Shown here: positions 37,051 through 43,400 of the stretch, piece by piece
Layout of the letters: each line of letters starts with the position of its first letter
Position numbering within the stretch: the stretch's first letter is position 1
Source of the DNA: Macrostomum lignano
Lineage: Eukaryota
Length of the DNA stretch: 64,000 bases
Direction: 5' to 3'
NCBI GenBank assembly: GCA_002269645.1
Contig: NIVC01002016.1
Span: forward strand, 1 to 64,000
Program-made: the position numbers and the translations under genes
Notes under the pieces: generated by a model
Databases searched by the model: none
Told to the model about the DNA's origin: nothing
What the model saw: only the letters and a program-made list of their open reading frames with translations

Positions 37051-37457
37051 ATGTCCTCGCCGGATCCTCAGCAGCCGAACGAGAATTCGTCGCCGAAACC
37101 TGACGACAGCCAGGAGCAGCAGGTGGAGCAGCTGCGGCTGAGCCTCCGGGCTCGGGACGAACAGCTGGCCGAGCTGACTCAGCAGGTTGGGGATCTGAAA
37201 TCCCAGGTGCGGGTAAAGGACCGGCGCATTGCGGAGCTGCTATCTCAGGTGGACAAGTACCAGTCCGTGTTCCACAGCGCCGGCTCCCCGATTCGCGATG
37301 GAGGCGGCAGCGGCGGCGGCGGCGGCGGCGGCGGCGGCGGCGGCAGTGGCGGAGGCGGCACAAGGCGGAATCGCGGAGTGGGCATCTCGGCTGAGCCTCA
37401 GAATGAGCTCATCGTCTCTCAGATGTCCACCGGCAAAATCTACCATAAAAGCAACGG
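37051..37457 (+). CDS. PRKG1: PKG alternative first exon A (I-alpha-like: zipper..[25 protein letters not shown])
   Basis: 407 nt, donor GG|GTGAGA, phase 2. Confidence 0.9.
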
Positions 37458-40400
37458 GTGAGAAGGGCTGCTGTGGGATAAATAGACTGAAATAGAGACA
37501 GATAAACAAAAAAACGGACGCTAAGACAGACAGACGGACAGAAAGACAGACAGACAGACAGAAACACAGACAGACAGACAGACAGACAGACAGACAGACA
37601 GACAGACAGACAGACAGACAGACAGACAGACAGACAGACAGACAGACAGACAGACAGACAGACAGACAGACAGACAGACAGACAGACAGACAGACAGACA
37701 GACACTCAGACAGACACTCAGACAGACAGACAGACAGACAGACAGACAGACAGACAGACAGACAGACAGACAGACAGACAGACAGACAGACAGACAGACA
37801 GACAGACAGACAGACAGACAGACAGACAGACAGACAGACAGACAGACAGACAGACAGACAGACAGACAGACAGACAGACAGACAGACAAACAGACAGACA
37901 GACAGACCGACATACAGACAGACAAACACACAGACAGACAGACGGACAGAAACACAGACAGACAGACAGACACACAGACAGAAACACAGACAGACAGACA
38001 GACAGACTGACAGACATATCGATCGGTACTGTGCTTGTTTAGAATCGCTAAAGAATGCAGGGTTTGCCGCAGAATTCTATAAGCTCTATTTCGAAGCCCG
38101 AATCACGTTTTATACTTTCGCGTTCTCCTTTGCTTACCCAAACGCGGTTCAGCCGCTCCCCGATATGCACTTGAGACAGCCGGGCCCGCAGCATTGCCCA
38201 GAAGTGAAAAGGACACGAGGCGAAAAGCGCCGGGACCCAGACTTGGGGGAAAATATCTCAGCCGAGGATCCATGGAGCGATCGGGTTTCGCCTTGATCCG
38301 AGCAGATGTCCACTCGGTCGCGTCCGATTCTCGTTTCATCCCTCCGCGATCCCGACCTGGATCGCCTCCCCCCTGCCAGAGGCCAGCCGCTGCCTTCCCA
38401 AGCATTGGATTATCAGGTCTGGCCCCTCAGCTCAGGTAGATTCGTTATTTCACTTCTCACTGCTCAGCGCGGTTATTATAATTGCAATATTGATTTGGTG
38501 CAGAATATCGAGAATGGAATCCTGCGGTCAAGCTGGGTTGAAATGCTATTTTTAGCAACTGAAAGAAGAGAAGTGTAGGTAGAACAAAGGCATGGGGAAT
38601 GCAAGGAGGAGATACGGAGGTGACGGTTAGAAGAGAGGCAGGAGAGGCAAAAGAGAGGCATGAGAGAGGCAGGAGAGGCAGGAGAGGCAGGAGAGAGGCA
38701 AATAGAGGAAGGAGAGGCAGGAGAGGCAAGGAGAGAGGCAGGAGAGAGGCAGGAGAGGCAGGAGAGGCAGGAGAGAGACTGGAGAGGCAGGAGAGGCAGG
38801 AAAGACAGGAGAGGCAGGAGAGGCAAGGAGAGAGGCAGGTAGAGGAAGGAGAGGCAGGAGAGAGGCAAGTAGAGACAGGAGAGGCAGGAGAGGCAAGGAG
38901 AGAGGCAGGTAGAGGAAGGAGAGGCAGGAGAGAGGCAAGTAGAGACAGGAGAGGCAGGAGAGGCAAGGAGAGAGGCAGGTAGAGGAAGGAGAGGCAGGAG
39001 AGAGGCAAGTAGAGACAGGAGAGGCAGGAGAGAGACTGGAGAGGCAAGAGAGACATGAGAGGCAGGAGAGGCAGGAAAGACAGGAGAGGCAGGAGAGGCA
39101 GGAGAGAGACAGGAGAGGCAGGAGAGGCAGGAGAGGCAGGAGAGAGACAGGAGAGGCAGGAGAGAGACAGGAGAGGCAGGAGAGAGGCAAGGAGAGAGAC
39201 AGGAGAGGCTGGAGAGAGACAGGAGATGCAGGAGAGAGGCAGGAGAGGCAGGAGAGAGGCAGGAGAGAGTATTATCTTGAGATAATACTAAAGATAATAT
39301 AATATAGATTTTACCAATTAAAATCAGTCCCTTATTCAGCCCCAGCTTCGCTGACGTGTTCAAATTCCTTAAAATCGCTCGCACATTTAGCGCTGAGAGA
39401 CAACTGACTGCAATTGCAGCAGCAGCAGCAACAACAACAGCAGAAGCAGCTTATCCATGAGCGGGCACACACAATAAGACTGCCAGTTCCTCGCTGCAGT
39501 CCATGCAGAATTTCTTCCCCGACAAGAGCTCAAAATTTCCTACAGCTTAACGCTGCGCTGAGCAAAAAGATGGAGAATAGAGATGGAGAAGCGAAGAAGC
39601 TGGAGAGAAGATTTCTGGCAAAGAAATTTCGCGTCGCTCACAAGAGGTTCGAGGAAAAATGAGGTCATCGAAGACAGGGACTTGAAGAATATGCTAAGAT
39701 AAAAATAAATCCAAGGAAAACAGAGCCAGGTTTCAACAAGTTCTGCATGTTTATCCCCAGTGCTGCTGCAGTCCCAGAAACTGCTCAGCCAATCAAAAAA
39801 GAATTTATTCCTTTACTTGTGAATCTGAGTAGCCCCGTGGATTTTATCGATCCTCTTATCAGCTGGGACTGGGTTTGGCGCCTGCTACTGTTGCGATAAT
39901 ATTTTGTAAGACCTGGTGTAGCAGTGGTGTCAGGGGTTCGGCCGCTAAATTTAGCTACCTTAATATCATAGCTAGTCTCATTAGCCTCATAGCTAGTTTC
40001 ATTAGACTCATAGCCAGTCTCATTAGCCTCATAGCCAGTCTCATTAGCCTCATAGCCAGTCTCATTAGCCTCATAGATAGTCTCATTAGCTTCATAGATA
40101 GTCTCATTAGCCTCATAGCCGGTCTCATTAGCCTCATAGCCAGTCTCATTAGCTTCATAGATAGTCTCATTAGCTTCATAGATAGTCTCATTAGCCTCAT
40201 AGCCAGTCTCATTAGCTTCATAGATAGTCTCATTAGCTTCATAGATAGTCTCATTAGCCTCATAGCCGGTCTCATTAGCCTCATAGCCATTCTCATTAGC
40301 CTCATAGCCGGTCTCATTAGCCTCATAGCTAGTCTCATTAGCCTCATAGCCAGCCCCATTAGCCTCATAGCCAGTCTGATTATTCAAATAGCCAGTGCAA

Positions 40401-43400
40401 TAAAACAGTCAAATAAAACGAACAATACAACACATTCCATATCTCTCTCCTTACACTCCGAAATTTCCAAGAAACCAAAAGAAGAAATACTCCAGTTGTT
40501 GAAGCAGCAAGCAGAAGCAGCCAGACAATTGCTAAACTTGAAGAGCCAGCCAATTCCTACAGCAAGTGCCCGTCACATCCAAGATAAGGAACGGATAGAG
40601 AGATAAAAGGACAGAGGCAGAGGCGAGGCAGGCACTCGGGAACAAGTGTTGCCAGCAGAAGCAGCCAAGCAGGTCCCCGCTGAAGCCGATTGGCTGGCGG
40701 CAGAATCCGCGCCAAGCTTTTTCTATCCGAGGTTGCCTGAGCCGCCAAGCTGTGACACTCGACAGCAGCTCGCCATGTCTCTAGCGATGGGCACCCTGCG
40801 GGAGCTGCAGTTGGCTTTGCAGCAGAAGATCGCCGAGCTGGCCGAGCGCGACCGGCTCATTGACGAACTGGAGTCCGAGCTGGAGTCCCGCAACCGTCTG
40901 GTTGAGCAGCTCCGCGCCGAGGTTGAACGGCTGCGCGGCCTGACGCGACGCCGGCAGCAGCCGGAGACTCCGGGTGGGGCGGTGGCCGGGCAGCCGATTT
41001 TGCAGCGCCAGCTGAGCGCCGCCAGGGGCTTCGGGCTGCAGCAGCAGCAGCTGGCGCCGCAGCAGCTGCCGCGCACCAAGCGGATGGCCATCAGCGGGGT
41101 GTCCTCCAGCGAGTTGGCGCTCTACGATGTCAAGCCCTGCGAGAAGTCGCAGCGGTGAGAGATGGACTGACAGACACTGAGACAGACACTGAGACAGACA
41201 CTGAGACAGACACTGAGACAGACACTGAGACAGACACTGAGACAGACACTGAGACAGACACTGAGACAGACACTAAGGCAGACAATGAAACAGACACTAA
41301 AATAGACACTAAGGCAGACACTAGGACAGACACTAAGGCAGACACTAGGACAGACACTAAAACAGACACTGAGACAGACACTGAGACAGACACTGAGACA
41401 CACTGAGACAGACACTGATAAGACACTAAGGCAGACACTAGGACAGACACTAAGGCAGACACTAGAACAGACACTAGGTTAGACACTAGGACAGACACTA
41501 AGACAGACACTAAGGCAGACACTAAGACAGGCACTAGGACAGACACTAAGGCAGACACTAAGACACTAAGGCAGACACTAGGACAGACACTAGGATAGAT
41601 ACTAAGGCAGATATACTAAGGCAGACACTAAAGCAGACACTGAGGCAGACACTAGGACAGACACTAAGGCAGACACTAAGGCAGATACTAAGGCAGACAC
41701 TAAGGCAGACACTAAGGCAGACACTAAGGCAGACACTGAGGCAGACACTAGGACAGACACTAAGGCAGACACTAAGGCAGATACTAAGGCAGACACTAAG
41801 GCAGACACTAGGACAGACACTAGGTTAGACACTAGGACAGACACTAAGACAGACACTAGGTTAGACACTAGGACAGACACTAAGGCAGACACTAGAACAG
41901 ACACTAAGGCAGACACTAGGACAGACACTAAGGTAGATACTAAGGCAGACACTAAGGCAGACACTGAGGCAGACACTAGGACAGACACTAGGTTAGACAC
42001 TAGGACAGACACTAAGACAGACACTAAGGCAGACACTAGGACAGACACTAAGGCAGATACTAAGACAGACACTAGGACAGACACTAAGGCAGACACTAAG
42101 ACAGTCAGACACCCGATTCAGGATGCTCATATTGATATTCATCATTCAGGCGAAATGTAAGGCGATAAAATGATGGGCTGTTGGCGCACTTGTCCCATGC
42201 ACAGATACGAGTATTGGCTGTGTTTTACGAGCTGATATCGAACGAAGCACTTTTTGGGCCCTAAAAGGGATTATAACTGCACAGGATGGTTAAGACCGGG
42301 ATAAAAATTTTTTGCTCAAATGAAAATTCTATGCTACTCGAGAATAAAGCTAAATTTCTTCTTTTGTGTCTGAAGAAACATCGTAACGCAATATTCGCGG
42401 GAATAGCTCGCTGCTATCCTTGATTGCTATCTCAAATTCTCATGTGAAATCCCTTTTTACTGATTACTAGTCAGTGTGTAAATATCTTCATTCCTGATAC
42501 TGTGAGGAGAATCTCCGATTTCTACTCCAATGTCCAAAGGAAATCCTGATCTTTACTCCACTTTTCAAAGGGAATCCCTGATCTCTACCCCAATGCTCAA
42601 GGGGAATCCCCGATAATTCAACTCGTATGCTCAAGGGGAATCCCTGATCTCTACTCCAATGTTCAAGGGGAATCCCTGATCTCTACTCCAATGTTCAAAG
42701 GGAATCCCCAATTTCTATTCCAATATTCAAGGGGAATCCCTGATCTCTACTCCAATGTTCAAGGGGAATCCCCAATTTCTATTCCAATGTTCAAGGGGAA
42801 TCCCCAATCTCTAATTCCAATGTTCAAGGGGAATCCCTAATCTCTGCTTCAATGTTCAAGGGGAATCCCCAATCTCTACTTCAATGTTCAAGGGAATCCC
42901 TCATTAAAACCAGCTCAAACCTCGCAATCGCAATGCCAATGCAGAACGCGCGACCTGATCAAGCGGGCCATATTGGAGAACGCGTTTATGAAGAACCTGG
43001 AAAACGCCCAGATCAGCGAGATAATTGACTACATGTATCCGGTGTCGCACAAGGCGCACGCGCTCATTATTAAACTTGGCGAAGTTGGCTCCCTTGTCTA
43101 CGTGATGGAAGGTAATCCCCCTCGGCAGGCAATTTTCCCAAAATCCCAATGGCAGTGATTCGAACCCTGCCCATTTAACACATTGCAGAGGGTTCAGCCG
43201 AGGTCACGAATACGAAAGGCGACAAGATCAATGAAATTGGGCCCGGCACCGTATTCGGGGAGCTGGCCATCTTGTACAACTGCAAGAGGACCGCCACTGT
43301 GAAAGGTGAGCGAAGGCATTGTGTCAGGGATAGTGACTCCAGATCACACTGACTGTCATTCTGTCAGGAAGTGACAGTCATTCTGTCAGAACAAGAACAT

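Follow-up and report, generated by a model that had tools for sequence, protein, structure and literature searches.

The window analyzed here, a stretch of 64,000 nucleotides (nt) from the flatworm Macrostomum lignano (GenBank assembly GCA_002269645.1, contig NIVC01002016.1, positions 1 to 64,000 of the forward strand), contains a gene for a type-I cGMP-dependent protein kinase (PKG) of the PRKG1/foraging type (37051-49651, + strand). Two exons at the 5′ end of this gene, termed exon A and exon B in the following, probably serve as mutually exclusive coding first exons. As judged by sequence comparison, exon A is an alpha-type N-terminus and exon B is unmistakably a beta-type N-terminus, i.e., the two resemble the N-termini of vertebrate PKG I-alpha and PKG I-beta, respectively. 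The system is not new in kind, the alpha/beta first-exon pair being known from PRKG1; taken together, the flatworm, mollusc, annelid, and insect exons indicate that both modules for docking and autoinhibition go back to the bilaterian ancestor.

A type-I PKG gene with two candidate first exons

Exon-by-exon assembly yielded a gene of 12.6 kb with 13 coding exons per isoform, in which all introns are of the GT-AG type (Table 1). Exons 3 to 13 (43189-49651) code for the CNB-A, CNB-B, and AGC kinase domains, and the predicted isoforms show the architecture of a type-I PKG, namely, a zipper and a pseudosubstrate at the N-terminus, a tandem pair of CNB domains, and an AGC kinase domain at the C-terminus. 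The isoform starting with exon A (isoform A) has a predicted length of 717 residues, and that starting with exon B (isoform B) of 708 residues (704 if translation begins at the second ATG). With one G added in exon 8 (see below), isoform B aligned to human PKG I-beta (PDB 7LV3), its best solved relative, with a score of 898 bits over residues 99 to 708. The score of the assembled protein to PKA was far lower (~260 bits), which identifies the gene product as a cGMP-dependent protein kinase of type I. Exon 2, the first exon common to both isoforms, is 64 to 66% identical to human PKG I. The top match in a protein search with the two N-termini was the M. lignano UniProt entry A0A1I8FAZ3 ("cGMP-dependent protein kinase"), which is 98% identical to exon A and places the window in this free-living flatworm or a species very close to it.

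Exons A and B both end in phase 2 at GTGAGA donors, and both are in frame with the acceptor AG that precedes position 42945, giving KSNG/TRDLIK or KSQR/TRDLIK (slashes denote exon boundaries). The first-pass annotation of this stretch had described two such exons, each with a zipper plus an autoinhibitory segment, a phase-2 end, and this common acceptor, and we recovered the same coordinates and peptides. A junction of the form K-S-x-x followed by S/T-[KR]-[DE]-L-I-K, in phase 2, is common to both window exons, four other metazoan first exons, and a vertebrate I-beta exon. The phase-2 donors of the other first exons read GA/GTAAGT (L003), AG/GTAAGC (L005), AG/GTAGGT and AT/GTGAGT (L006; all three are other metazoan contigs), and CA/GTAAGC (vertebrate I-beta). 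All first exons for which DNA was available end in phase 2 at one and the same residue, and therefore their read-through open reading frames (ORFs) stop one codon further on.

We propose that transcripts starting at exon A or at exon B would each be spliced from the respective phase-2 GTGAGA donor to the acceptor at 42945, thereby giving rise to two kinases (~717 residues and ~708/704 residues, respectively) with common cGMP-binding and catalytic domains. The two isoforms would differ in their leucine zipper, expected to govern dimerization and the docking of partner proteins, in their linker, and in the pseudosubstrate that would plug the active site. In mammals, the alternative N-termini provide distinct zippers, linkers, and pseudosubstrates, resulting in isoform-specific partners and activation properties (PMC9417419; PMC10299703); by analogy, the flatworm isoforms should likewise differ in partners and activation properties. 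We infer that both exons are expressed and alternatively used, with functional consequences, and that the choice between them would be made by separate promoters; alternatively, a spliced leader could be added upstream of exon B. M. lignano is a trans-splicing species. The hexamer cagcag is present 1 to 6 nt before both start codons (37044-37049 and 40764-40769), and its AG dinucleotides could act as acceptors for spliced-leader trans-splicing.

Alpha-type and beta-type N-termini

The similarity of exon B to human I-beta, which the first-pass annotation had proposed, was evident by several measures, and the human sequences quoted there proved correct for both I-beta (PDB 3NMD and 7LV3) and I-alpha (1ZXA and 7MBJ). 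More specifically, a search of the whole PDB with exon B retrieved 3NMD, the zipper of human I-beta, with an E value of 3e-10, the Smith-Waterman comparison with human I-beta gave z = 22, and 28 of 52 zipper residues (54%) are identical to human I-beta, with all zipper a-positions conserved and the acidic DELExE patch retained. The zipper of exon B also has the beta-type core RQRD-x-LIDELE. The frame of exon B is uninterrupted over 126 to 127 codons. Its first in-frame ATG lies at 40775 (MSLA-), and the homologous start, MGTLRELQ, lies at 40787 in the context gcgATGG; the start proposed earlier, MGTLRE, thus stands as the homologous one, with the correction that the frame may begin four codons upstream of it. 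In the autoinhibitory segment, PRTKRMAIS of exon B aligns with PRTKRQAIS of human I-beta (7LV3), and the I-beta-specific Arg at P-5, Lys at P-3, and Arg at P-2 are all present. According to a crystal-structure paper, these R, K, and R residues are critical for I-beta autoinhibition (PMC9417419).

Exon A, which is preceded by an in-frame stop 69 nt upstream of its ATG, carries the motifs of alpha-type N-termini, i.e., VDKYQSVF (DKYQSV) at the end of the zipper and an RxRxxGISAEPQ pseudosubstrate. The comparison of exon A with human I-alpha alone gave a weak signal (Smith-Waterman z = 5.5, a value not exceeding that for I-beta; z = 2.9 for the zipper alone), and a PDB search with exon A returned no match to the I-alpha zipper entries 1ZXA or 4R4L at E values up to 10. 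Judging from these comparisons, the likeness of the exon A zipper to human I-alpha is demonstrable solely via intermediate sequences. The earlier claim that exon A is like I-alpha accordingly held at the level of the alpha profile and of clustering (see below), and failed at the level of a direct zipper match to human I-alpha. At the position of the redox-active Cys42, exon A has a Tyr, as do all 21 non-vertebrate alpha-type sequences seen.

To classify the two N-termini, both were used in an exhaustive profile-free protein search, which returned 194 matches. Among the best 150, which we inspected, 124 were beta-type (starting with MGTLR[DE]LQ) and 22 were alpha-type (...DK[YF]QSV...RxRxxGISAEPQ). 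We then subjected 87 trimmed N-terminal segments, together with exons A and B and the N-termini of human I-alpha and I-beta (91 segments), to unsupervised average-linkage clustering. The split at k = 2 placed exon A and human I-alpha with 21 alpha-type segments, and exon B and human I-beta with 66 beta-type segments, such that the clusters follow type and not taxon. Consistently, profiles from which human and M. lignano sequences had been left out (beta, a non-vertebrate set; alpha, insects plus other animals) separated the two exons: exon A scored 83.0 bits with the alpha profile and 26.5 bits with the beta profile (a margin of 57 bits), versus 22.1 and 85.2 bits, respectively, for exon B (a margin of 63 bits; 85 to 91 bits over the beta profiles). 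The corresponding alpha and beta scores were 79.2 and 37.4 bits for human I-alpha, and 67.9 and 138 bits for human I-beta. A profile scan of the window detected no third first exon of either type.

M. lignano has another alpha-type PKG N-terminus (P0007; UniProt A0A1I8F4F5). With 48% identity to exon A and the same junction at its end (..KSFSKTKG), P0007 indicates a paralogous PKG I gene in this species.

Table 1. Positions of the exons and exon features of the M. lignano PKG gene in the window
Feature	Position	Strand	Remarks
Exon A (first exon 1-alpha)	37051-37457	+	407 nt from ATG 37051; phase 2; donor GG/GTGAGA at 37458
Exon A leucine zipper	about 37123-37272	+	Heptad-rich segment
Exon A poly-Gly	37300-37359	+	20-residue Gly-rich insert from a (GGC)n tract
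Exon A pseudosubstrate	37363-37401	+	13 residues; then ...KIYHKSNG
Exon B (first exon 1-beta)	40775-41154	+	380 nt from 40775; phase 2; donor CG/GTGAGA at 41155
Exon B leucine zipper	40787-40942	+	Followed by Gln-rich linker
Exon B pseudosubstrate	41069-41104	+	12 residues
Last 45 nt of exon B	41110-41154	+	Behind internal AG (tgtcctccag/C); in-phase acceptor; cassette in public model
Exon 2 (first common exon)	42945-43111	+	Start of cGMP-binding domain A; 19-residue start, then ...GSLVYVME; acceptor AG 42943-42944
Common exons 3-6	43189-43305, 44778-44883, 45249-45485, 45651-45722	+	
Common exons 7-10	46299-46367, 46464-46556, 47239-47378, 47463-47552	+	
GGG run in exon 8 (46464-46556)	46527-46529	+	One G apparently missing
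Common exons 11-13	47685-48113, 49191-49320, 49556-49651	+	Stop TGA 49649-49651

First exons of both types in other animals

Alpha-type and beta-type first exons were both found on each side of the protostome-deuterostome split. Among named species, the alpha type is represented by the foraging N-termini of beetles (Rhynchophorus, Callosobruchus, and Cryptolaemus) and of the sandfly Sergentomyia, and the beta type by first exons of molluscs (Sinanodonta, Pinctada, Saccostrea, and Batillaria), annelids (Owenia and Ridgeia), and many vertebrates. We also scanned metagenome contigs by exon-2 alignment, which yielded 46 loci, and then searched these for first exons by profile scanning. In two contigs (L016 and L027; ENA ERZ1740065 and ERZ1740062, respectively), an alpha exon, a beta-like exon, and exon 2 follow each other in this order within 3 to 5 kb, with GIS in the pseudosubstrate of the alpha exon and AIS in that of the beta exon; the kinase domain of L016 is at most 76% identical to any named protein. 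In nine long-ORF, apparently spliced, metatranscriptome-like contigs, the alpha exon runs directly into exon 2. Two beta-type first exons stand in tandem before exon 2 in L006/L031 (1104-1448 and 3627-3968) and in L037 (1-318 and 7230-7535), indicative of repeated tandem duplication of a coding first exon. No second first exon was seen in the 10-kb flanks of L003/L004, L010, and L057, where introns may be longer, and no first exon was seen within 10 kb of the exon-2 loci L001 and L002. In L006, moreover, a CNB-B exon has two candidate copies that resemble each other (6877-6972 and 7750-7842; ..V.VTQK...GEKAL) and are possibly mutually exclusive internal exons.

The first-pass annotation had proposed that exon order and junction position match vertebrate PRKG1. 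Regarding the junction, this was borne out by the vertebrate I-beta exon; regarding the order, we found alpha upstream of beta in the window, L016, and L027, which is also the vertebrate order. Its further suggestion that the alpha/beta switch predates the protostome-deuterostome split gained support from the occurrence of these types in molluscs, annelids, and insects, together with the shared junction and order. On these comparisons, the alpha/beta arrangement is best read as inherited from a bilaterian ancestor. More specifically, we consider it moderately probable that a module of alpha exon, beta exon, and exon 2 (joined in phase 2) was present in the last protostome-deuterostome ancestor, that it has stayed intact in vertebrates, the flatworm, and two or more further non-vertebrate lineages, and that its beta exon was lost in Drosophila melanogaster. 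In the literature searched, we came across no account of alpha/beta first exons for an invertebrate, although an earlier one may exist; honeybee amfor, for instance, may have alpha and beta variants.

If the module is indeed ancestral, M. lignano, with transgenesis and RNA interference at hand, would offer a compact model of alpha/beta choice in which the two exons are spaced by 3.3 kb, and exon choice in this species might be made by spliced-leader trans-splicing and not by promoters. The locus is small and tractable for tests of isoform-specific function. The annotation of invertebrate PKG (foraging) genes should also change, as beta first exons are now deposited as orphan small proteins or omitted; Drosophila foraging, the best-studied invertebrate ortholog, is described with one zipper-bearing N-terminus only.

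Alternative readings of the locus and comparison with known systems

Several observations weigh against our reading of exons A and B as an inherited pair of mutually exclusive first exons, some of them general and others bound up with a particular alternative. Among the general ones, exact-sequence look-ups of both exon ORFs returned no match, and L005 has an alpha exon and exon 2 without a beta exon between them, so that the alpha/beta pair is not universal. Moreover, exons A and B scored 16.1 and 11.8 bits, respectively, with the Pfam family PKcGMP_CC (PF16808), both under its gathering threshold of 35 bits, compared with 60.1 bits for human alpha, 51.8 bits for human beta, 21.6 bits for the flatworm paralog P0007, and 26.7 bits for a beetle alpha exon. 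Because the flatworm alpha paralog and the beetle alpha exon also fall below the threshold, we read the low scores of the window exons as lineage divergence.

The alternative that survives best, which we nevertheless regard as unlikely, is that the gene is a pseudogene copy and that its exon pair is a relic of an arrangement that functions at another site in the genome, M. lignano having many duplicated loci. As assembled, exon 8 is frameshifted by 1 nt, with TLG and the Gly-rich ATP loop in different frames, and therefore this gene copy might be non-functional; the public protein model avoids exon 8, and the second alpha-type N-terminus (P0007) is found in the same species. One added G restores the frame of exon 8; the frameshift reflects an assembly error in the homopolymer or, alternatively, a mutation that disables this copy. 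However, a single indel in a G homopolymer is a typical long-read error, each isoform has 12 further coding exons that are all open, highly conserved, and flanked by intact splice sites, and the addition of one G suffices to obtain the high-scoring alignment to 7LV3 reported above.

Less likely still is that a single first exon is in use and that exon B (or, with lower probability, exon A) is a decaying relic no longer present in functional mRNA. Exon B has AISGVS in its pseudosubstrate in place of AISAEP, which occurs in at least 90% of beta-type sequences (the Glu is at least 90% conserved among 23 beta-type sequences), and hence lacks both the Glu and the Pro of this motif. In human I-beta, this Glu forms a salt bridge with R209, and the Pro contacts Y188/Q213 (PMC9417419). 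The common region of the flatworm protein retains R209, Y188, and Q213, and without the Glu-Pro contacts, weaker autoinhibition is predicted for the flatworm beta isoform. The long Gln-rich linker of exon B and its low PKcGMP_CC score also fit decay, as does the fact that the public protein model includes no more of exon B than its final 15 codons. In contrast, the R-T-K-R-M-A-I-S part of the pseudosubstrate is intact, including the R/K/R residues; the frame is open from an MGTLRELQ start in good ATG context, the zipper a-positions are kept, and a consensus donor is present in the right phase. Exon B also retains the beta-profile scores given above, and the subthreshold Pfam scores are shared by the flatworm alpha paralog and the beetle alpha exon.

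We assign a somewhat lower probability again to serial splicing, in which exon A would be joined either to the whole of exon B, giving a double zipper, or to its 45-nt tail. The reading frame is kept on either path: the former could use an in-phase acceptor at 40732, and the sole public model of the locus (A0A1I8FAZ3) follows the latter, joining exon A to 41110-41154 and then to exon 2, without the beta zipper. The pyrimidine tract of the 41110 acceptor is as good as that of real acceptors. A0A1I8FAZ3 is, however, an automated and faulty model, which drops a 42-nt GT..AG piece of the exon A zipper, part of exon 2, and all of exon 8. Furthermore, neither two zippers nor an insert of the 45-nt type was present in any of about 150 N-terminal relatives, and the nine spliced contigs from other animals join the alpha exon directly to exon 2.

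Lastly, we rejected as highly improbable a flatworm-specific tandem duplication or a convergence merely resembling vertebrate alpha/beta: a similarity between exons A and B can be detected (z = 6.6), and first exons have in some cases been duplicated in tandem within a lineage (the paired beta-type exons of L006 and of L037), but the type-wise clustering and the profile margins make either origin very unlikely, each type occurs in several named phyla, and the order of alpha, beta, and exon 2 recurs in L016 and L027. Convergence had been left as an alternative by the first-pass annotation, which had also named a grouping of the two exons as a lineage-specific duplicate as an outcome that would speak against its proposal; in the clustering of 91 segments, no such grouping was seen.

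Long tandem arrays fill almost every intron of the gene (37524-38016, 41169-42104, 45742-46203, 46606-47207, and 48133-49110). An (AGAC)n array occurs twice among the introns (123 and 150 copies), a 12-mer is repeated 78 times directly after the exon B donor, and one 47/48-nt minisatellite is present in two different introns. Outside the PKG gene, overlapping ORFs on the - strand (55759-56633) contain motifs recalling mariner/Tc1 transposase (..HDNAPAH..), with no Pfam match at E < 0.01. A 461-codon ORF at 16742-18127 (- strand), in which hydrophobic segments occur along with tracts of poly-Gly and poly-Gln, likewise had no Pfam match and possibly represents a neighboring gene. Pfam searches with seven neighboring ORFs gave no match.

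Compared with vertebrate PRKG1, whose alpha exon lies upstream of its beta exon, the proposed flatworm arrangement is alike in having two first exons, each with an ATG, a zipper, a linker, and a pseudosubstrate (with G at P0 in alpha and A at P0 in beta), and a common exon that starts with S/T-[KR]-D-L-I-K and is joined at the same junction residue in phase 2. The flatworm differs in scale, its first exons lying 3.3 kb apart in a gene of 12.6 kb, whereas the vertebrate gene is very large. Relative to vertebrate I-alpha, exon A has the Tyr in place of Cys42 and a poly-Gly insert; relative to vertebrate I-beta, exon B has no Glu-Pro behind its AIS, and its Gln-rich linker is longer. A further difference is that the flatworm trans-splices, so exon choice need not depend on promoters.

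The foraging gene of D. melanogaster is an ortholog within the type-I PKGs and likewise has several N-termini as alternatives, and insect foraging N-termini cluster with exon A, i.e., with the alpha type. The P1/P1alpha/P3 N-terminus of D. melanogaster has a zipper and an autoinhibitory sequence similar to mammalian PKG I, whereas its P2/P4 N-terminus reportedly has no conserved zipper or autoinhibitory sequence (PMC10299703). D. melanogaster thus has no beta exon, unlike the flatworm gene, which retains a true beta-type exon. The beta-type exons of molluscs and annelids, which are annotated as small proteins of their own, share with exon B the MGTLR[DE]LQ start, the zipper, the KR-x-AIS pseudosubstrate, and the junction, but have kept AISAEP where exon B has AISGVS. 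Finally, L016 and L027 resemble the window in their compact arrangement of alpha, beta, and exon 2 within 3 to 5 kb, and differ from it in that their beta-like exon is more divergent (45 to 53 bits, with no Pfam match) and in that both of their pseudosubstrates read ISAAP.

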